From the sequence record OR413575.1: a DNA stretch of 64,000 nucleotides, one strand, 5' to 3'. Below are positions 39,178-57,871 of the stretch, one piece after another (positions within the stretch are counted from its first letter, which is position 1; each line of letters starts with the position of its first letter). The notes beneath the pieces were generated by a model, which searched no databases, was not told the origin of the DNA, and saw only the letters and a program-made list of their open reading frames with translations. The position numbers and the translations under genes were made by a program.

Positions 39178-41505
39178 ATGATCCGTAAATCCAATAATGG
39201 TTCATCCGCTGCGTTTACCAACGTGATGAGCAAAATCCGTAGCACCATCACCGGCGGTCTTAACGTTCTGCCTGCCAAAGACAAAGTTGGCAACATCGGT
39301 ATCTCTGTAGAGAACTACAGCACCGATGATCAGGTGATTTTCGATAATGCTATCGATCACCTGGAAAAAGGCTTCCAGAGCATCTCTACCGAAGCATTCA
39401 ACCTGGCTGACTCCATGTCTGCCGCTCAGGGCGAAAACGCTGCGAACCAGGGCGGTCTGCACTACACCTCCCTGCAGAACAAAAACTGGATGAGCGATCG
39501 CCAGAAAGAAGTTTCTGTTGAATCTGCAACCATCCTGGGCCTGGGCCACAACTCCCCTGGCAAATACATGGAAATCCAGCCGAACGAATTCGGTAAAGAT
39601 GTCCGCCTGAACCAGATGCACACTTCTGGCAGCTTCGGTACTCATGCCGTTGTTGGTGAAGATGCTCGCCCGGCTATGGAATCGTTCGACGAAACCGAAA
39701 CCGAAAAATGGCGTGAATTCTCCTACGCTGTCAACCTGATGGCCGCTAAGACTCACCCGTTCGCTGAACTGTTCTATCCGCTGTACGTAACCACTCCTGA
39801 AAACGCTGGCTGGCTGATGACTATCCGTCGTACCATGGTTTGGGAAGGTTTCCAGCAGACTGAACTGAACGGCAAAGGCGTCGAGATGCGTAAAACCAAC
39901 GCCCTCGAAGCACTGCTCGAGTACAAAGTTCTGGAAACTGACAGCACCCGTCTGTATCCGGTACTGACCGATGAAAACAAAGAGTGGTTCATCGACGACG
40001 CAGTTGTTGCACCGCAGCCGAAAGAGCAGGGCGCTGATAAGTTCGAAACTCAGTACCTGAAGTTCAACACTGATCACATGTTCAACCTGATCAACCTGGC
40101 GCAGACTCCTAGCCGTATGGCTAAAGGTGCTCCGAACTTCACTGACTCTCTGGACCGTCGTATCGCTCTGGAAGAAGTCGTGCTGAAAGTTGGCGACGAC
40201 GTAATCATCCTGCCAGTTAACCGTGATACCAACGCGCAGTTCCTGGCACCGCGTGAATACAACTTCCGTGATATGCACCTGAAGTTCCACCCGACTCAGC
40301 TGACCCTGAAGCCGGAAAACCTGAACACTGATGATGAGATCCCTGCATCTCTGAAAGCACTGTTCGACAAAGGTTACGGCCTGACCTTCGGCATGAAAGT
40401 CGACGGTGAAGCGAACGTGGAAAGCGGTAACGCGCAGGTTCGTGTTGCGAACGTACAGTTCACTGGCGCGTTCAAACTGGACAAGCCGACCGAAGTTCTG
40501 GCACTGGACGACGCACTGATCAAAGCTGACGTACCGGCTTCTATCAGCGCTGAAGGTTTCAGCCTGGAAGCACGTCTGACCAACCTTAACCAGCTGGAAC
40601 GTGGTAAACTGGTTGACTCCGACGTACAGAAAGAAGGTTTCATCATCCCAACTCTGTCCCCGATCTGTATCGTTAAACCGAGCCAGATGGATGACGACAA
40701 AGTTTATCCGAAGATCGAATCCCTTCAGTTCGTTTATCGCACCATGATGCGTAACGACTCTGTTACCGCGCTGCTGAACCGTGCCGAAGTCCTGGAAAAA
40801 ACTCTGGGTAACGGCGTAACTCACGGTCTGGAATCTCACCTGGGTATGGAAGGTCTGGGTCAGTACTACTACCGTCCGCACTTCGAACGTATCGAGATCG
40901 ATGTGGAAGCAGAACTGAACAACCTGACCTCTAACGCTAAACTGAGCGACATCCAGGGTCTGATCGTTGCACGCATGAACGAAGTGATCTACCGCGTGAA
41001 CAAAGCGACCGGTTACTCTGCAGCACTGGAAGAGCAGTTCCCTGGCTCTACTCCTAAGCCGCACGTAGCTATCGGTACTGACCTGTACCTGCCGCAGTTC
41101 ATCATGGTTCCTGGTGACGACCGTACCGTTTCTATCGGTTTCGATCACACCATCGCTTCCATCTCCGACCTGCGTATGAGCAACAAGATCGTCATGCAGT
41201 TCACCCTGCCGGGCGAGAAAGAACCTCATCCGATGCAGTCCGGTGTTTGCGGCATGATCCCTGAGTATCTGGCTAACTTCCAGATGATCCGTGATCAGCG
41301 TATCGCTAACGAAATCCGTCTGACTCCACGCTACCGTTACTTCAACTTCACCTGCGTCATGATCGTCATCGACGTCGTGAACCTGGAAGAAGCAGTTGCG
41401 AAACGTACTGCGATGAACATGAACAGCAAAGACGTTAAAGCGTTCCCAGGCGAAGTAGCTCCAACCGAACCAGTTGATCCGGTTGATCCAGGTAATGGCG
41501 GTTGA
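39178..41505 (+). CDS. major capsid protein (phiKZ gp120-like; 775 aa precursor)
   Basis: Size; extreme codon optimisation; propeptide with ISVE, ISTE, VSVE, PAME|SFD sites; C-terminal PRYRYF motif; position after DnaB. Confidence 0.9.
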   Translation: MIRKSNNGSSAAFTNVMSKIRSTITGGLNVLPAKDKVGNIGISVENYSTDDQVIFDNAIDHLEKGFQSISTEAFNLADSMSAAQGENAANQGGLHYTSLQNKNWMSDRQKEVSVESATILGLGHNSPGKYMEIQPNEFGKDVRLNQMHTSGSFGTHAVVGEDARPAMESFDETETEKWREFSYAVNLMAAKTHPFAELFYPLYVTTPENAGWLMTIRRTMVWEGFQQTELNGKGVEMRKTNALEALLEYKVLETDSTRLYPVLTDENKEWFIDDAVVAPQPKEQGADKFETQYLKFNTDHMFNLINLAQTPSRMAKGAPNFTDSLDRRIALEEVVLKVGDDVIILPVNRDTNAQFLAPREYNFRDMHLKFHPTQLTLKPENLNTDDEIPASLKALFDKGYGLTFGMKVDGEANVESGNAQVRVANVQFTGAFKLDKPTEVLALDDALIKADVPASISAEGFSLEARLTNLNQLERGKLVDSDVQKEGFIIPTLSPICIVKPSQMDDDKVYPKIESLQFVYRTMMRNDSVTALLNRAEVLEKTLGNGVTHGLESHLGMEGLGQYYYRPHFERIEIDVEAELNNLTSNAKLSDIQGLIVARMNEVIYRVNKATGYSAALEEQFPGSTPKPHVAIGTDLYLPQFIMVPGDDRTVSIGFDHTIASISDLRMSNKIVMQFTLPGEKEPHPMQSGVCGMIPEYLANFQMIRDQRIANEIRLTPRYRYFNFTCVMIVIDVVNLEEAVAKRTAMNMNSKDVKAFPGEVAPTEPVDPVDPGNGG

Positions 41506-41673
41506 CTACACGAAATCTTCAAGGGTGAAGTATTAGGTGGTTTTGCGCTACCTGCCTTGGAGATCACTGGATTCATGGAAGCAGAATCTGGTGGCACTGT
41601 AGACACTGAGGCAGGACGTCCCATTCAGTTGGAGAAGTCACCTAAGCGGGCAAGGAAGTCAAAGCGTCGCTAA
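41506..41673 (+). CDS. in-frame 55-aa extension of MCP (putative UGA readthrough)
   Basis: LHEIFKGEVLGGFALPALEITGFMEAESGGTVDTEAGRPIQLEKSPKRARKSKRR, in frame after TGA and before the terminator; two motifs shared with other virion ORFs. Confidence 0.75.
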   Translation, partial: LHEIFKGEVLGGFALPALEITGFMEAESGGTVDTEAGRPIQLEKSPKRARKSKRR

Positions 41674-41683
41674 GTAGTCAATA

Positions 41684-41722
41684 GAATAGCTGGAGCCCTT
41701 CGGGGTTCCAGCTTTCTTTTTT
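41684..41722 (+). terminator. intrinsic terminator of the MCP transcript
   Basis: AGCTGGAGCCC-TTCG-GGGTTCCAGCT plus T-rich tail. Confidence 0.85.
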
Positions 41723-41770
41723 GCCGCCACTTTGTTTATATATGGATATTACTGTCAGACGTCTAACTAT

Positions 41771-49977: not shown

Positions 49978-52320
49978 ATGGCTTTCACCACACAGGCGCT
50001 CTATACGGAACAGGTTCTTAAATTGACGCGGTCAGTCGTAATCAAATTAGATTCGATTGCCTACGTGATGAATGAGCATCTTAAACGGATAGGGTCGCCA
50101 GTTGACGATGATAGACCGGAGACTTGGAAGTATTATCTTCACTTGTCTGGCCAATATCATAGCACTGACACATTGATGCGTGTGACGTCATTAGACACCC
50201 TTGAGGAAATTGATTTCACATACGATAACCTCAAATATCACCGAGCGACTTTTAATGCGTATCGGGAAAAGGGTACCTACTACAGAGCGTTGATTAATAA
50301 GTACGAAGAACAAATTGATTTGATCAACGGTATTCTGAACCCGGTGGATATCTGGGTAGCTATAAAGGCAAAGAACTTTACCATAATCCAATACGATAAA
50401 GGTATGGTCAATGGTAACGAAACTAACTTGATCCCTGAGTTACAAAAATGGGTGATAGGGTATTCGGATAGCTGGTATAACGGTAACTACGTTTACCTGT
50501 TCGATGAATATGTTGCGTTGTTCTTACGTGGTCTGTACGATCACATGAGCGGTGAGATCATTAACATCCGCCGCCGTAACACTCGTACTGAATACGTCCA
50601 TGATTATCATCTCTGGGCTTATCTAGCCAGTCATCAGCGGCTAGATAAATACCGCGACTACTTGACACGGGAACAAGCGTTGTGGTTGTACCGCAACATT
50701 GCTTATCTGGAAGCACACCCTGGTTGGGATCATACATTTGGCGAATTAATAGAATGGCTACTGACAAAGCGAAACATTCCATTAACGTCCTTTATGCTGG
50801 CCCACAACTTAGAATCTTTACCTGACTCTATTTCACCAACACCTGAGATAGTTAAGGTGCCGTTGAACCGCCCTGCTTATACAGCAGGTGACGTACGTAA
50901 GGAACCTATTCCTGCGACCTTGGCAAAAGAGATTCCGTTAGCAGAAGGGAACGCCGACTATTACGCCGAACAAATTGTTGACGTACCAGAGAAGTTTAAA
51001 CTCAGTCGTTACAACCAGCTACAGACCAAAGTTCTGGAATCGGACATGGTTGACCGCAGTGATGCACAACCTGTACATTATATTACTACGGTCTTAAACG
51101 AGTGGATCTACCTGTCAGCTACTGACAAGTATCAAGCTAACGTAACATTGACTAACCCGTATACATCGGAAGTAATTTCGATGACGGCTAAAGAGTCAGT
51201 GATTGTTTGGTTGTATTGTTTACACCGGATGTTGGAAGTTGAGATCCAAACGGTCCCCACCTTCCTAGCCCATGATGTAATGCGTCCTATCTCACCACGG
51301 TTTGGTGAATTGCGTGACATGTCACCGTACAAGTATATTTCGGAAGAGATGATCTTGGCAGTGATGGATGAATTTGTTCCTCAGGGACAGATTATATCCG
51401 TAGAGAAGTTCCAAGAAGTAACGACGGCTATCCACAACGCCGTTACTCAGTACCGTTACTTTTATAGTACCCAAGAGAATCACCATACTCGTGGGCACTT
51501 GGAAAACCTCACACGTCGCATGTTCATGGAGTACCGTTGTAAGCTCGTAGAGGATACTACCTACTACGACGACTTCTTCCATCTGAAAGGTTGGAAGATG
51601 GACAGTATGACCGTTGAGCAATATCAGGATATGGGAAACCAGATCTTCCTGACTGCTACGGGCCTTGACCTGAAAAACGTCAATAGCGCTCGTGCTATTC
51701 AAGAAGCTATGATCCAGCTGATGAAACAATTGAGTTCGTACAGTATTCAATTCCTCAGCAATATTACTGATAGCTCTGTAACCGTCCTAGATCGCCCTGT
51801 AATTCGTGTTGGCGATGTTGATACAGATGCATCGCAAGATGCACGTTACAAGCTCAGGGTAGCGGTAGAGAACGTATACGGCCAAGCTACGTCAGGTAAG
51901 CGTTGGGATATCGGTCATGGAGTGCAGATTGTAGATGACCGGGTTCACGTAAGTTCAAACCTTCAAGTACGTTACGATCTAACTGCTGGGTTTACTGCAT
52001 CTAGTCAGGTAACCACTACGCGTCGTCTTAAACTTCCATTAGCGAAGATTAACTTGAAGCGTGGGCTGAATATTAACATTGGTCTGGAACAACGTAAATT
52101 AGACGGTGTCTGGATTGTAGATGTATACGAGGCGGGTGGCGATCCTATTACCAAGGCTATTGAAAAACATGACCTTGATTATTTCTGGCCGGATGTTGAA
52201 GAGGCAGCAGGTCTGAACGTAGACAATAATGCGCTCAGCGGTGTTTGGAATAAAGTAGGCGTATCAGATCTGGATGAGACATTCAGTGATGATTTGTTGA
52301 AAGGTTTTGATCTCCCTTGA
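49978..52320 (+). CDS. virion/baseplate wedge protein (phiKZ gp128-like; 780 aa)
   Basis: TWKYYLHLSGQYH motif; divergent from portal; C-terminal LxxxFxxxxLxGFxxP motif. Confidence 0.6.
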   Translation: MAFTTQALYTEQVLKLTRSVVIKLDSIAYVMNEHLKRIGSPVDDDRPETWKYYLHLSGQYHSTDTLMRVTSLDTLEEIDFTYDNLKYHRATFNAYREKGTYYRALINKYEEQIDLINGILNPVDIWVAIKAKNFTIIQYDKGMVNGNETNLIPELQKWVIGYSDSWYNGNYVYLFDEYVALFLRGLYDHMSGEIINIRRRNTRTEYVHDYHLWAYLASHQRLDKYRDYLTREQALWLYRNIAYLEAHPGWDHTFGELIEWLLTKRNIPLTSFMLAHNLESLPDSISPTPEIVKVPLNRPAYTAGDVRKEPIPATLAKEIPLAEGNADYYAEQIVDVPEKFKLSRYNQLQTKVLESDMVDRSDAQPVHYITTVLNEWIYLSATDKYQANVTLTNPYTSEVISMTAKESVIVWLYCLHRMLEVEIQTVPTFLAHDVMRPISPRFGELRDMSPYKYISEEMILAVMDEFVPQGQIISVEKFQEVTTAIHNAVTQYRYFYSTQENHHTRGHLENLTRRMFMEYRCKLVEDTTYYDDFFHLKGWKMDSMTVEQYQDMGNQIFLTATGLDLKNVNSARAIQEAMIQLMKQLSSYSIQFLSNITDSSVTVLDRPVIRVGDVDTDASQDARYKLRVAVENVYGQATSGKRWDIGHGVQIVDDRVHVSSNLQVRYDLTAGFTASSQVTTTRRLKLPLAKINLKRGLNINIGLEQRKLDGVWIVDVYEAGGDPITKAIEKHDLDYFWPDVEEAAGLNVDNNALSGVWNKVGVSDLDETFSDDLLKGFDLP

Positions 52321-52362: not shown

Positions 52363-53238
52363 ATGGTTAATCAATCTCCAAGACTCGTGCCGCTCGATGG
52401 TTATTACAACCGTCCCAGCGATGATCTATGGTGGGCAATCTTTAAACGCGATAACCCGCGTGTAGACTACGAGCAGAATCAGGTCCGGGTTTCTCAGATG
52501 GTAGAGAACCCAGACAATGATCCTAAACGCAACACTCGTGGTAAACTCGTTGCTATTCCGGGTATGGGTCGCGAAGGGGAGGACTGGTTAACGTGGAACC
52601 GTCCTTTCATGGAAGATCTGTTTAAAGGCAAGGACGTCTGGGTACAACCTAAAGGACAGACTACTATCAGCGAAGTGGTTGAGCAATTCAACCAGATCTG
52701 GAAATTCCAGTTGTCGCCACGTGACTACTACGATCAGAATATTGAAGTTCTGCATACCCCTATGGAAGTTAAAGTGCAGATGCGTGATACCTGTCTTTGC
52801 TTCCAAGGCGTGTTGACCATCAATATTGGTAACCCTCATGTTCATATCGGTGAAGTTATCATTAACCGTGACTTGAGCGGGGTCGAATACCCGACCAAAC
52901 AATCGAAGAAGATGCAAGGTCCTTTCTACGTTTGGGATCGTGACTTCACGTTTGCTGGTAGTCAATTACGTGACGAGTTTGGGTACGATGATATTATATC
53001 AGCTGATCAGTTTGATATCTTAGCCGACCTCTTCCCTGAAGAATGGCAAATGGTAAATCAAACCGCTGACTGGAACATGCAGGAAGCAAGAGTCGTTTAT
53101 AACGGCAAAACAGCTGACTGCCCTGCTCCATGTAATCAAAAATACCAACGGGTATTGCTGATTGAAATGAGCGAGGTTTTGTCAGGTAATATCGCTGGCC
53201 ATATTAATTTGCACTACGATGTACTTGACGGTGCCTGA
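52363..53238 (+). CDS. virion structural protein (~291 aa)
   Basis: GGAG RBS before ATG 52363; IGEVIINRDLSGVEYP motif; ARVVYNG...LLIEM C-terminal pattern. Confidence 0.65.
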   Translation: MVNQSPRLVPLDGYYNRPSDDLWWAIFKRDNPRVDYEQNQVRVSQMVENPDNDPKRNTRGKLVAIPGMGREGEDWLTWNRPFMEDLFKGKDVWVQPKGQTTISEVVEQFNQIWKFQLSPRDYYDQNIEVLHTPMEVKVQMRDTCLCFQGVLTINIGNPHVHIGEVIINRDLSGVEYPTKQSKKMQGPFYVWDRDFTFAGSQLRDEFGYDDIISADQFDILADLFPEEWQMVNQTADWNMQEARVVYNGKTADCPAPCNQKYQRVLLIEMSEVLSGNIAGHINLHYDVLDGA

Positions 53239-53279: not shown

Positions 53280-53825
53280 ATGTATAAGTACGACATTGCC
53301 AAAAACGGTTCAGAGAACATGTTGGCTTTGCTGAATGAATCAGCTAAAGAAGGCGTTGTAGTCACTGCTGCTGACGTAAGCTGGTCTGTACCAGCTGCCG
53401 ATGCTACTGTTGCTGGTGCCAACACTAAGATCACTCTGAGTGTTGTAGAAGGTTCCGAAGTCGTTAACAACGAATCGCCTGCAATCGATCGTCACTACAC
53501 TCGTCTCGATCTGTCAACAGTTCTGACTACCCTGGGTGCTGACACTGCATTCGAAGAAACTTTGGAAGCCTACGACACTGACGCTAAGAAATTAGCTAAA
53601 TTTGTTGATGCCACCGGTATCAAACTCGAAGCAGGTGATGCGACAGTTGCAACTGATGAAGAATCAGCGACTGTTACTATCACAATGGTCGCAACTCATC
53701 TCGGTCTGATTGGATCAGCTGAAATGCTTTTCGAGAAGCCAGTACCGGAACTTCCTAGCCTGAATGATACGTTCACAGGTGAGACGTTGAACGGGTTTGA
53801 CGCACCGGCTGCTGGCGGCGCATAA
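53280..53825 (+). CDS. acidic virion protein, possibly decoration (181 aa)
   Basis: AAGGA RBS; YTRLDLS motif; C-terminal LNDTFTGETLNGFDAP. Confidence 0.65.
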   Translation: MYKYDIAKNGSENMLALLNESAKEGVVVTAADVSWSVPAADATVAGANTKITLSVVEGSEVVNNESPAIDRHYTRLDLSTVLTTLGADTAFEETLEAYDTDAKKLAKFVDATGIKLEAGDATVATDEESATVTITMVATHLGLIGSAEMLFEKPVPELPSLNDTFTGETLNGFDAPAAGGA

Positions 53826-54982: not shown

Positions 54983-55897
54983 ATGACAACGTTTTATAAA
55001 GACCCTATCGTTCAGATTGTTGAAGAACTCAACGAAAAGAACAAAGATACCTTAACTCGTCCGCTTGAGATCAACGATCTCGTATTTACAGAAGTATCGA
55101 ATAACCCAACTACAGGCGAACGCGAAGTTATTGCGCGTGCTGCTAGCTGGGCTAATTATTACGGTACTATTCGTAATCCAGGCGTTAAATACAAACGTTA
55201 CTTAGGCCATAAGTTATTTATGGTTGCTCCGCGTGTTTCCGGTTCTACCGGCGACAGTTACGCTGATATCGCAATGCGTTTAGCAGAAGAATATAATCTT
55301 CCGCCATTTAAAATCCAGCCTAGCGAAGACAGCACAAAGCAGGATTATGACTTACCGTTCAGTCTCCATAGTCGTACAATCGATAATGAAGACTGGAGTT
55401 CCGTTGAAGTAACTCTCGTATTCGAACCTACTTCCATCGGTTATTTCGGTGGTGTCACGGTCAACGTTTATAACGCTGAACGCGATCTGAGTCAGATCGT
55501 TGTAAATCGTTCGCTTGATGGGCTGGTTTACCCGGATGATACGAAAGGTGAGACTGGTAGTTTGTCTACACTTACTTATCCTGTCAAATGGGCTATCCCG
55601 GAAGCAGGTCGTGCTATCCTGAGCGAAGTTGGCCAAACCTTACCTGCTGAAGAGAATGACCCAATCATTGTCGCGATGATTGATTCTATTGTTAACTTCT
55701 ACGTCCTTGAAGATGCGGAAGCAAACACAATGAGCACTGCACTACTTTCTGTATTGCCTGGCTCTAAGGTATTGTCAACCAACCTCGCCGCTACTGGTGA
55801 GCTAACGGGTGAAGAAATCATCACTCTTGAAGCGAAACCTGCGGATGGCGTTCCTTGGATCGGTACAGTTTATATTCGTGGTCCTGAATTCTACTAA
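54983..55897 (+). CDS. virion structural protein, paralog-like to 52363 (304 aa)
   Basis: GAGGG RBS; LSQIVVNRSLDGLVYP motif. Confidence 0.65.
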   Translation: MTTFYKDPIVQIVEELNEKNKDTLTRPLEINDLVFTEVSNNPTTGEREVIARAASWANYYGTIRNPGVKYKRYLGHKLFMVAPRVSGSTGDSYADIAMRLAEEYNLPPFKIQPSEDSTKQDYDLPFSLHSRTIDNEDWSSVEVTLVFEPTSIGYFGGVTVNVYNAERDLSQIVVNRSLDGLVYPDDTKGETGSLSTLTYPVKWAIPEAGRAILSEVGQTLPAEENDPIIVAMIDSIVNFYVLEDAEANTMSTALLSVLPGSKVLSTNLAATGELTGEEIITLEAKPADGVPWIGTVYIRGPEFY

Positions 55898-55905
55898 GCC
55901 GATCG

Positions 55906-55937
55906 AAGAGGAAGGGCTTCGGCTCTTCCTCTTTTTT
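55906..55937 (+). terminator. intrinsic terminator
   Basis: AAGAGGAAGGGC-TTCG-GCTCTTCCTCTT plus Ts. Confidence 0.8.
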
Positions 55938-55966
55938 ATGTTACCTCTTATCTAGGGCATAGAACA

Positions 55967-56323
55967 ATGATCTCTTCCAAATTAACTTATTTAATCGCCG
56001 AGTCCGCATATAACGCCACTAAAGTATTTTCAGAACAAGTGCTAAACGAAGAGAAAACCGAGTGGGGTTTATTACCGGGCGCGGCGAAAGCACGATACAT
56101 CAATGCAGTTTATAATTGCATCACTAAGCGCGTTAGTGACCCCGCCGCCGTACATGGAATGTGGTTAGTCGACATGACTAAAGAAGGATGGGTATATGGC
56201 GAGGAGTACGACGAAGCTAAGAAAGAACATCCTTGCATGAAAGAATATGCAGATCTGGAATTAGGCCAGCAAACCAAAGATCAAATCTTTATTGAGTTGC
56301 TGAAACCTTACTACACCCTATAA
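55967..56323 (+). CDS. RyR-domain protein (118 aa)
   Basis: VHGMWLVDMTKEGWVYGEEYDEAKKEHPCMKEYADL...KD fits the RyR (PF02026-type) H-x-x-W...GW-x-YG...HP pattern. Confidence 0.75.
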   Translation: MISSKLTYLIAESAYNATKVFSEQVLNEEKTEWGLLPGAAKARYINAVYNCITKRVSDPAAVHGMWLVDMTKEGWVYGEEYDEAKKEHPCMKEYADLELGQQTKDQIFIELLKPYYTL

Positions 56324-56335
56324 CCGGGGGAACTA

Positions 56336-57871
56336 ATGCAAATCATTACTCCACTCTGGCAGGATGTATTGACGAACCATCTCAATCGCCTGTACCAACA
56401 AGAATGGGCTAATTCTGATTTATTGTTTAGTCACAACCCTCATTACCCATTACGTGAACGGGTAAAGGTTATTGACGTGTCTGGTGTTGGTATATACCAG
56501 AACATGAACGTATTCCAGATAGTCCCTTACGACGTCTCAGATTACTTCTCAGGCGTCCCTGTAATTATTCATGCAGAACATACATTGTCCGGAACAGAGC
56601 TCTTAGAACAGCTTACAGACCGTTATGGTATTGTATTCGACCCAGAGATAGATCTGGATCAGAGTTTTGTTGTAGGAGAATATAAACCAGGTGATGATGT
56701 TGAGATCGTTATCTCTCCAAAATCATTTATCTGGACAGGGAAGATCGTTGTTCGTATCCGTGAAACGATTAACGATTTAAACTATGCGGTCAGAGTACGT
56801 GACCTGGATGCTCTCGTTATTCCAGATATTATCGAACCTGATACGCAGTCGTTGAAATTAATCTTGACTCCGGTCGTTATTAAAGATGTAGATGTACGCC
56901 GTGCATTTACTAATAATGAAGGAGTCCTGATGACCGGCGCATTACTCGACAAGTTAATGATTGATATTGTTGAGTCTGCCGTTATTGCTCCGGAATATTA
57001 CAACGAACTTTTTACGCTGTTAAATGGTCAAACATTTGTTAATACGGTTATCACCGAAGACGTATTAATTGAATCGCATACTGTCAGTCCATTACGTAGC
57101 GAGCACTTCTCTGGTACACCATCGTTTACTTGCGAACCGTACACTCAGAAACCAAACTTGTCAGTGGAGATACCTCCTATTGACATGTCTACGTTTAAGT
57201 TAGAAGGTAGTCAGTGGCGTGTTTACACAGGGCCGCTTAATACCCAAGACTTGAGTATCGTAGAAGAGCTCCTCAAACTGGCTGTAGAAACAGGAAGTAG
57301 CGAAGTCGTAACTATCAACGATATTATCACTTCGATTCATTCTGAAGGGGTTGAGGGCGTATTTGAAGGGTATAGTGGTCATGTCATGCCGGAGGATTAC
57401 GATACCGGTAAAACTATCATCCTTTTACGTACAGCACCGAACTCCCCGTACAGCGGTTCTATCCGTTTGGAATATCCTGTCGAACGTTTCGTTGTCCACA
57501 TGGAGAAAGGTAAAGACTTCTTCCAAGCAGAAAACTCAGACCCAATTGAGTTAGAAGCCAAACGCTATATCCTAGCAGAAGAAGAACTCCCGTTCCAGTC
57601 GCACAAATACCGTCGTGAATCTCACCTCGGTCGTGTAACAGTATTCAGCTCACTGTTCCTGGATCAGAACTTCATGATTCAAGATACGGTGACAGTTGAA
57701 GACTTGGGTAAATGGAACGAGTACACTAGCAGCGTTAACCCTGTTGCTACTGTCCGTGAACCTAAGGAAGAAACCGAACCTAAAGTCTACTTCATGGAAG
57801 CAGAAGCGGGTGGAACTGTTGATACCGAGAAAGGGAAACCTATCGAGATGGAGAAATCAAGAACGGTATAA
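56336..57871 (+). CDS. virion structural protein (511 aa)
   Basis: GGGGG RBS; LNYAVRVRDLDALVIP motif; C-terminal FMEAEAGGTVDTEKGKPIEMEKS. Confidence 0.65.
   Translation: MQIITPLWQDVLTNHLNRLYQQEWANSDLLFSHNPHYPLRERVKVIDVSGVGIYQNMNVFQIVPYDVSDYFSGVPVIIHAEHTLSGTELLEQLTDRYGIVFDPEIDLDQSFVVGEYKPGDDVEIVISPKSFIWTGKIVVRIRETINDLNYAVRVRDLDALVIPDIIEPDTQSLKLILTPVVIKDVDVRRAFTNNEGVLMTGALLDKLMIDIVESAVIAPEYYNELFTLLNGQTFVNTVITEDVLIESHTVSPLRSEHFSGTPSFTCEPYTQKPNLSVEIPPIDMSTFKLEGSQWRVYTGPLNTQDLSIVEELLKLAVETGSSEVVTINDIITSIHSEGVEGVFEGYSGHVMPEDYDTGKTIILLRTAPNSPYSGSIRLEYPVERFVVHMEKGKDFFQAENSDPIELEAKRYILAEEELPFQSHKYRRESHLGRVTVFSSLFLDQNFMIQDTVTVEDLGKWNEYTSSVNPVATVREPKEETEPKVYFMEAEAGGTVDTEKGKPIEMEKSRTV

Follow-up and report, generated by a model that had tools for sequence, protein, structure and literature searches.

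Does translation of Salmonella phage SPLA10's major capsid protein (MCP) end at the stop codon of its gene? The stretch analyzed, referred to as the window, comprises nucleotides 1-64000 of the SPLA10 genome (OR413575.1, 210 kb). SPLA10 carries genes for a nuclear shell protein and a PhuZ tubulin and is therefore classed as a nucleus-forming jumbo phage (chimallivirus); its closest GenBank relative is Serratia phage PCH45. The MCP has the C-terminus PTEPVDPVDPGNGG, with GNGG as the last residues, followed by TGA at 41503-41505 and the bases CTA. Behind this stop lie 55 codons in the MCP frame that are conserved in relatives and begin with a peptide motif shared with the DUF7941 proteins of the same phages. 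Comparison of these sequences makes it highly probable that a recoded, extended MCP is produced. The interpretation that we favor, and hold to be probable, is that programmed readthrough gives a minor capsid form that anchors DUF7941 fibers.

The conserved reading frame behind the MCP stop

The elements of the MCP locus are:
39178..41505, + strand: MCP gene, TGA-terminated, 775 aa, phiKZ-type MCP (PF25620/phrog_3231)
41503..41506, + strand: leaky termination signal TGA-C (stop plus the C at +4), with TGAC kept in 9/9 aligned clade relatives
41506..41670, + strand: 55-codon in-frame MCP extension (proposed readthrough tail), conserved in frame in relatives
41506..41553, + strand: motif A, L-x-E-x-F-x4-L-x-G-F-x-x-P, equivalent to the DUF7941 linker/docking segment
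41512..41531, + strand: invariant nucleotide block including the 5-bp hairpin CTTCA/TGAAG, fixed even at synonymous sites in the clade
41572..41640, + strand: motif B, F-M-E-A-E-x-G-G-T-V-D-T-E-x-G-x-P-I-x-x-E-K-S, common to the C-terminus of open reading frame (ORF) 56336..57871
41641..41670, + strand: basic tail PKRARKSKRR, found only in SPLA10; close relatives end in SGR or similar
41688..41723, + strand: intrinsic terminator-like hairpin and T-run that closes the MCP transcription unit 3' of the tail

The tail frame is closed by TAA at 41671-41673. An earlier, sequence-only reading of the window had reported the TGA-CTA stop with its 55 same-frame sense codons, which the sequence confirms, and a terminator at 41684; a terminator-like hairpin does exist, and its position is 41688..41713, in a layout that is visible in relatives as well. 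The reported match of tail residues 23-45 to the C-terminus of ORF 56336..57871 was recomputed exactly, with 18 of 23 residues identical (10 codons identical and 8 differing only at synonymous sites). In the two shifted frames of the same comparison, 9/22 residues are identical and 0-1 codons are synonymous. The claimed similarity of tail residues 1-16 to the C-terminal motifs of 53280..53825 and 49978..52320 also holds, at 8/16 positions each, and these matches include five and four synonymous-only codons, respectively. The sole ATG in the tail is at 41575, also as reported, and an in-frame TTG occurs at 41557.

Relatives were compared by reading the DNA directly 3' of the MCP stop in each fetched genome or contig. 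Metagenomic relatives (the L-numbered contigs) were reached by protein searches with the MCP and then through the contigs that encode the matches; IMG/VR viral contigs searched with the MCP gave no related loci. The tBLASTn search suggested by the sequence-only reading, run with the 55-aa tail against GenBank phages, matched PCH45 alone, in frame behind the MCP. The wider distribution of the tail emerged only from reading behind each MCP stop. Fifteen lineages hold the motif in frame directly behind a leaky stop, with MCP identities that go down to ~29%. The segment was thus found in frame behind the MCP in relatives with synonymous-biased conservation, the comparison on which the earlier reading had staked its extension.

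The tail of PCH45 follows TGA-C, begins with the same motif, and extends for 47 in-frame codons to just before the terminator. Five metagenomic relatives (L009-L013) with MCPs 83-61% identical to that of SPLA10 have TGA-C followed by 47-51 in-frame codons; their tails have motif A in common, differ by whole-codon indels in a variable middle, and are conserved at the end. At MCP identities within the 58-47% range, L022, L024, and L025 have TGA-C with 45, 41, and 39 codons, respectively. L023 (MCP 49% identical) has TAG-C with 37 codons and L014 (55% identical) has TGA-G with 18 codons. Shorter tails were also found behind the MCPs of the Moabitevirus phages 2050HW and Moabite (TGA-A, 16 codons), Totoro (16 codons), the Erwinia phages PhiEaH1 (TGA-A, 18 codons) and pEa_SNUABM_54 (TGA-C, 19 codons), and the Escherichia coli phage Goslar (TGA-A, 28 codons). 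Every in-frame tail contains [L]-x-[ED]-x-[FIL]-x4-[LV]-x-G-F-x-x-P, in this form or a closely similar one. The stops before the in-frame tails, Totoro being left out of the tally, are TGA-C in 11 cases, TGA-A in four, TGA-G in one, and TAG-C in one; there is no TAA and no stop with U at +4.

One of the 16 tail-bearing lineages departs from the MCP frame. The L015 MCP (54% identical) ends in TAA, and it is the -1 frame that holds the motif. The heptamer C_CCA_AAG, of the canonical slippery type X_XXY_YYZ, stands two codons ahead of this stop; from there a slip of -1 leads straight into the motif. The SPLA10 MCP junction has no slippery heptamer and its tail is in the zero frame. Other phages are tail-less: Klebsiella phage KpLz-2_45 has a TAA stop, no tail, and a terminator ~30 nt later, and Klebsiella phage FBKp24 has no tail.

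Selection on the tail peptide was measured as the ratio of nonsynonymous to synonymous differences (pN/pS), computed on two alignments (A1 and A3). Motif A gave a pN/pS of 0.34 (9 sequences) or 0.22 (6 sequences) in the MCP frame, compared with 1.03-1.15 and 0.76-1.03 in the shifted frames. The pN/pS of the conserved C-terminal block (the motif B region) is 0.39 in frame versus 0.86-1.19 in shifted frames. The Leu at position 10 of motif A is encoded by up to five Leu codons (the sixth codon found there is Met) and Pro 16 by all four Pro codons. Tails range in length from 16 to 55 codons, and the indels between them are whole codons that preserve the frame. The motif peptide is retained on unrelated nucleotides in Moabitevirus, PhiEaH1, pEa_SNUABM_54, and Goslar. 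The pN/pS values, indels of whole codons, and a peptide that persists where its nucleotides are unrelated argue that the tail is translated in the MCP frame.

The distal parts of the tails are more varied. Motif B is well kept between the MCP tail and 56336..57871 in SPLA10, and in the PCH45 orthologue of 56336..57871 (L021:12920-14395) it is faint, reading T-E-x-G-x-P-x-x-E. There are hints in these sequences of a recent exchange between the MCP-tail and 56336..57871 loci within SPLA10. In the more distant L022 (3011-3145) and L023-L025, the second half of the tail contains, in place of motif B, a second and degenerate copy of the L-x-G-F type of motif, as in K-L-T-G-F-R-Y-P of L022, and these tails may offer two docking sites. 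A basic end of the PKRARKSKRR type was found in none of the relatives whose tails were read.

Motif A and the DUF7941 proteins

The proteins that carry motif A or motif B outside the MCP tail are encoded in the following genes:
49978..52320, + strand: phiKZ gp128 homologue (PDB 9xqs_C, E value 5e-124), ending in motif A (52270..52317)
52363..53238, + strand: full-length DUF7941 protein (N-terminal domain, linker, and C-terminal domain), its linker aligning with motif A
53280..53825, + strand: short DUF7941 protein of the Goslar gp23 type (N-terminal domain and linker only), ending in motif A (53760..53807)
54983..55897, + strand: DUF7941 paralogue, its linker aligning with motif A
56336..57871, + strand: DUF7941 module with a further C-terminal region, ending in motif B (57791..57859)

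Pfam family PF25613 (DUF7941) matches four proteins of the window, encoded by 52363..53238, 53280..53825, 54983..55897, and 56336..57871. The product of 49978..52320 is also homologous to an 803-aa virion structural protein of Goslar. A Pfam search of the MCP tail gave no match, and the MCP with its tail is without a DUF7941 domain. The PDB was also searched by sequence, with no match to either of the two short DUF7941 proteins or to the gene that follows the MCP. When motif A is taken from the MCP tail and from the end of the gp128-like protein, it aligns with the segment directly behind the N-terminal domain in 4/4 DUF7941 paralogues of the window, with its L and P invariant. The PCH45 orthologues of the gp128-like and gp23-like proteins retain motif A. 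A search of the whole SPLA10 genome for strict L-x-G-F-x-x-P in frame found only three C-terminal sites, which are the MCP tail, the gp128-like protein, and the gp23-like protein.

The motif was compared within individual phages. The Goslar MCP tail and the C-terminus of Goslar gp23 have the common core D-N-V-A-D-G-F, which is absent from the SPLA10 versions, and the Totoro MCP tail and the gp23-like tail of the same phage have [DE][DE]-A-F...L-x-G-F in common. Across the four lineages compared (SPLA10, PCH45, Goslar, and Totoro), the MCP tail co-varies with the gp23-like tail of its own phage.

DUF7941 proteins consist of an N-terminal domain, a disordered linker, and in some cases a C-terminal domain, and AlphaFold 3 predicts that they form head-to-tail oligomers in which the linker docks on the following protomer's N-terminal domain (bioRxiv 10.64898/2026.04.21.720040). 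Purified Goslar gp22 assembles into filaments, and the Goslar virion contains ~580 copies of gp22 and ~2,140 copies of gp23, neither of which is seen in the maps (bioRxiv 10.64898/2026.04.21.720040). The phiKZ proteins gp126 and gp127 fit outer peripheral baseplate density (bioRxiv 10.64898/2026.04.21.720040). The model of the Goslar hexon MCP covers 583/740 residues and lacks the N-terminal 157 (bioRxiv 10.64898/2026.04.21.720040). The modeled residues follow this missing segment, and the Goslar MCP C-terminus is therefore ordered. Capsid models of Goslar and phiKZ are deposited in the PDB (11bt and related entries, 36za, and 8y6v).

These features suggest a scheme for the function of the tail. 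Most ribosomes would terminate at the UGA at 41503-41505, and a minority would pass UGA-C by means of a host near-cognate tRNA and add the 55-residue tail. The first 16 residues of this tail, motif A, would represent the same peptide as the DUF7941 linker, so that tail-bearing MCP subunits and the gp128-like baseplate protein ending in motif A would be anchors that offer a free linker peptide. A DUF7941 N-terminal domain would bind the anchor and a filament would grow from there, built of plain DUF7941 units and of units with extra C-terminal domains, the latter possibly distal. The efficiency of recoding would set the number of anchors per capsid. Recoded MCP subunits are proposed as capsid anchors because motif A is the equivalent of the DUF7941 linker, its other carriers are gp128-like and DUF7941 proteins, and the polarity fits. 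We infer that the tail binds the DUF7941 N-terminal domain and that it is exposed on the exterior of the capsid. Taken separately, the anchoring of DUF7941 proteins as the role of the extended MCP stands at about even chances.

The sequence-only reading had proposed readthrough and a docking tail that recruits decoration, fiber, or vertex proteins. Readthrough gains support from the in-frame conservation in relatives and from pN/pS, the extended protein itself being a prediction from sequence, and docking to fiber proteins is narrowed to the DUF7941 linker motif with gp128-like and DUF7941 proteins as its carriers. A broader and more tentative generalization, to which we give somewhat less than even chances, is that the capsid, and not just the baseplate, is, for many of the jumbo phages that form a nucleus, a platform for a DUF7941 'fiber cloud'. 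The docking peptide would then be carried by a few percent of the MCP subunits, in a proportion fixed by stop readthrough or, in one lineage, by the -1 frameshift, and these subunits would seed head-to-tail filaments ending in receptor-binding modules. This generalization, if true, would account for the location of the ~2,700 unmodeled gp22 and gp23 copies per Goslar virion. The Goslar structure left open where and how thousands of DUF7941 proteins are attached, and the tail makes this question testable. Models of how these phages encounter their hosts would change if the capsids bear host-binding filaments.

Several observations qualify the scheme or weigh against it. A 55-codon open frame is by itself not unusual and is compatible with chance: at least 55 open codons follow the stop in 12/62 long frames of the window. 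The significance of the tail derives from its conservation in relatives and not from the length of the frame. The single-sequence fold 3' of the stop is no better than that of shuffled sequences (z = -0.9), and the consensus fold is weak (-3.8 kcal/mol) with no covariation. No convincing stimulatory RNA structure was thus found, and readthrough may be no more efficient than the basal rate at a weak stop. The Goslar preprint, which includes virion mass spectrometry, contains no mention of readthrough, stop codons, or frameshifts (bioRxiv 10.64898/2026.04.21.720040). In Goslar, gp35, the gp128 homologue, shows the motif only in a weak form, and the AlphaFold2 single-sequence model of the gp23-like protein (53280..53822) has a predicted local distance difference test (pLDDT) score of 37. 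Phages RAY, SA002, Xoo-sp14, RSF1, and Eowyn have DUF7941 proteins (bioRxiv 10.64898/2026.04.21.720040) and are without the motif in the MCP frame behind the stop; one strict DNA pattern found none in the other frames of these loci. The absence of a detected tail from five phages with DUF7941 proteins means that the anchor is not universal. Finally, an inward-facing MCP C-terminus would make an external fiber anchor wrong.

This last point bears on the strongest alternative, in which the tail is made by readthrough and acts inside the head or during assembly, where it marks penton subunits, contacts the inner vertex-binding complex, or recruits packaged proteins. The stoichiometry agrees with such a role, since Goslar pentons account for 55 of 1,615 MCP copies (~3%), which is of the same order as the share of extended subunits to be expected if a weak UGA is read through. 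Unassigned density adjoins the Goslar vertex-binding complex, and gp22 and gp23 are unmodeled in the virion map, which makes their location itself only a proposal. However, the other carriers of motif A are the phiKZ gp128 homologue and DUF7941 proteins, which in phiKZ are placed in or near the outer peripheral baseplate and not in the head, and motif A is positionally equivalent to the DUF7941 linker. No named protein of the vertex-binding complex was found with the motif, and the strict pattern occurs at three in-frame sites only. We regard a role inside the head as unlikely, though as a serious competitor of the fiber anchor, which we prefer.

Other roles for the tail were tried and set aside. 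Motif A as a mimic of the PhuZ C-terminal tail in capsid trafficking was rejected, because the SPLA10 PhuZ C-terminus bears no resemblance to it. The consensus of the phiKZ prohead protease is S/A/G-x-E, and a prohead-protease propeptide was dropped because no such site, judged by eye, is conserved between SPLA10 and PCH45. A head-interior targeting signal is weakened by the identity of the motif carriers as gp128-like and DUF7941 proteins.

Initiation, nucleotide constraint, and passage of the stop

The segment could be translated as a peptide of 16-55 aa separate from the MCP, by reinitiation or from a non-canonical start. Compact genomes are known to use termination-reinitiation, and SPLA10 has the in-frame ATG at 41575 and TTG at 41557. 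The most conserved part of the tail, motif A, nevertheless begins at the first post-stop codon, upstream of any start. The first tail codons across lineages are CTA/CTG, ACG/ACT, or GAG, none of which is a usual start, and where the tail begins the relatives compared conserve neither a start codon nor a ribosome-binding site. The short tails of Moabitevirus, PhiEaH1, and L014 (16-18 codons) have no ATG, GTG, or TTG before the motif. Independent initiation needs no identity of frame with the MCP, yet 15/16 lineages are in frame, and a canonical -1 slippery heptamer precedes the tail of the sole lineage that is not. With a motif that starts in the very first post-stop codon, and with no start codon at that position, independent initiation is very unlikely. 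The earlier argument that it does not explain the tail, made from the position of motif A upstream of the ATG at 41575, is borne out by the first codons of the relatives.

The segment could also be untranslated, either as a conserved RNA or DNA element (3' untranslated region or terminator context) or as the decaying end of a DUF7941-type gene. The nucleotide sequence itself provides some reason to consider this. The 20 nt at 41512..41531 are invariant at synonymous sites across nine relatives with MCPs 47-83% identical, whereas later codons of motif A vary freely at synonymous sites. This block is part of the SPLA10-type clade only, and the comparison suggests that it is under extra nucleotide-level constraint; it may assist readthrough as a 3' context element. 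In addition, 55-codon open frames are not rare by chance. Against an untranslated element are the pN/pS of 0.22-0.39, which is confined to the MCP frame, the retention of Leu and Pro through several codons, the whole-codon indels, and the preservation of the peptide on unrelated nucleotides in distant lineages. The segment has no Rfam family and no significant fold, and a gene remnant would not remain open and in frame across MCPs diverged to ~29% identity. The probability that the segment is untranslated is accordingly put very low, on a par with that of a separate peptide.

Readthrough of the stop agrees with the properties of UGA in enterobacteria. Termination at UGA is the poorest, especially with C at +4; in E. 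coli, tRNA-Trp tends to misread UGA when A follows, and UAA shows the least readthrough (PMC5289835). UGA with C or A at +4 is a weak, misread context in both E. coli and Salmonella (PMC5289835), in support of the weak termination context that the sequence-only reading had assigned to UGA-C. ARAGORN found no tRNA or transfer-messenger RNA gene in the whole 210-kb SPLA10 genome, and TGA terminates 20/62 long frames in the window. The lack of a tRNA gene and the ordinary use of TGA as a stop indicate that there is neither a suppressor tRNA nor a recoded genetic code. An Rfam search returned no selenocysteine insertion sequence (SECIS) or other family, its only hit being a chance match to a long noncoding RNA (E = 5.7). 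The 5-bp hairpin of the invariant block is without covariation support and is absent from the TGA-A, TGA-G, and TAG lineages. Near-cognate readthrough of an intrinsically weak stop is the most economical mechanism.

Enterobacterial hosts possess selenocysteine machinery, and the SPLA10-type clade has a small conserved hairpin 12 nt after the UGA, but redefinition of UGA by a suppressor tRNA, an alternative code, or a SECIS-like hairpin has next to no probability given the tRNA, stop-usage, Rfam, and hairpin results above and the use of TAG in one lineage and a frameshift in another.

Precedents for recoded capsid proteins

Extended coat proteins made by recoding are already known. The Leviviricetes coliphage Q-beta has a coat gene with a leaky UGA, and a few percent readthrough yields the extended minor coat protein A1. 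The SPLA10 arrangement resembles A1 in having a coat gene with a leaky UGA, a C-terminal extension, and a minor form with its own function, which in SPLA10 is read from sequence only. Q-beta differs in being a single-stranded RNA phage with a T=3, non-HK97 coat and a folded extension of ~200 aa, whereas SPLA10 is a double-stranded DNA (dsDNA) jumbo phage with an HK97-type MCP. The extension here is a short linear motif tail of 16-55 aa, and the mechanism that would produce it switches by lineage between UGA, UAG, and a -1 frameshift.

T7 10B and the corresponding proteins of Listeria phages A118, A500, and PSA are minor extended MCPs made by frameshifting, and the T7 addition is displayed on the outside. 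These are closer cases in that tailed dsDNA phages recode close to where the capsid gene ends and so make a C-terminally extended MCP. The event in T7 and the Listeria phages is a frameshift, and the extension has no known function or a dispensable one; here the predicted event is mostly stop readthrough, with a -1 heptamer only in L015, and the tail carries a motif common to identified virion fiber and baseplate proteins. A dependence of the exact signal on the lineage has a parallel in the tail assembly chaperone G/GT, a recoded product that is conserved in very divergent phages while its recoding signal varies. G/GT is a non-virion chaperone produced by a frameshift (-1 or other) well inside its gene, unlike the MCP tail, where recoding is at the stop of a structural gene.

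The filament model for DUF7941 proteins (Goslar gp22/gp23 and phiKZ gp126/gp127) is the nearest functional comparison, since motif A is equivalent to the linker and the core of the Goslar MCP tail is nearly identical to the Goslar gp23 C-terminus. The published model puts anchors at six peripheral-baseplate sites and involves neither the capsid nor recoding (bioRxiv 10.64898/2026.04.21.720040). The MCP tail consists of the linker only and has no DUF7941 domain, and is accordingly proposed as a ligand or anchor and not as a family member.

Full-text literature searches that combined readthrough or frameshifting with jumbo-phage or chimallivirus capsids found no description of such a protein, in line with the statement of the sequence-only reading that none was known for phiKZ-like phages. 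What is new is that conserved stop readthrough probably occurs in a tailed dsDNA phage's capsid gene, that its mechanism switches between lineages, and that the tail is linked to a defined fiber-assembly motif. If true, this would be the first conserved programmed readthrough in the capsid gene of a tailed dsDNA phage, and it would place conserved recoding in the most abundant protein of the intensively studied Chimalliviridae (Goslar, PCH45, and relatives). Because it lies behind a stop, the tail escapes annotation pipelines and proteomics databases. The lineages also provide a clear natural example of one appended peptide with several routes to it, by way of UGA, UAG, or a -1 slip.

Two further reading-frame features were observed in the window. 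An antisense, ATG-started open frame of 675 codons (39202..41229, - strand) spans nearly the whole MCP gene and carries no annotation in the GenBank record of SPLA10; it is most likely a by-product of MCP codon usage. The three consecutive genes 54983..55897 (DUF7941), 55967..56323, and 56336..57871 (DUF7941 plus further domains) share one frame, and only single TAA stops part them, the 23- and 4-codon spacers being without another in-frame stop. The shared frame of 54983..57871 is possibly a coincidence, and it occurs in a fiber-gene cluster of a phage that apparently recodes elsewhere.

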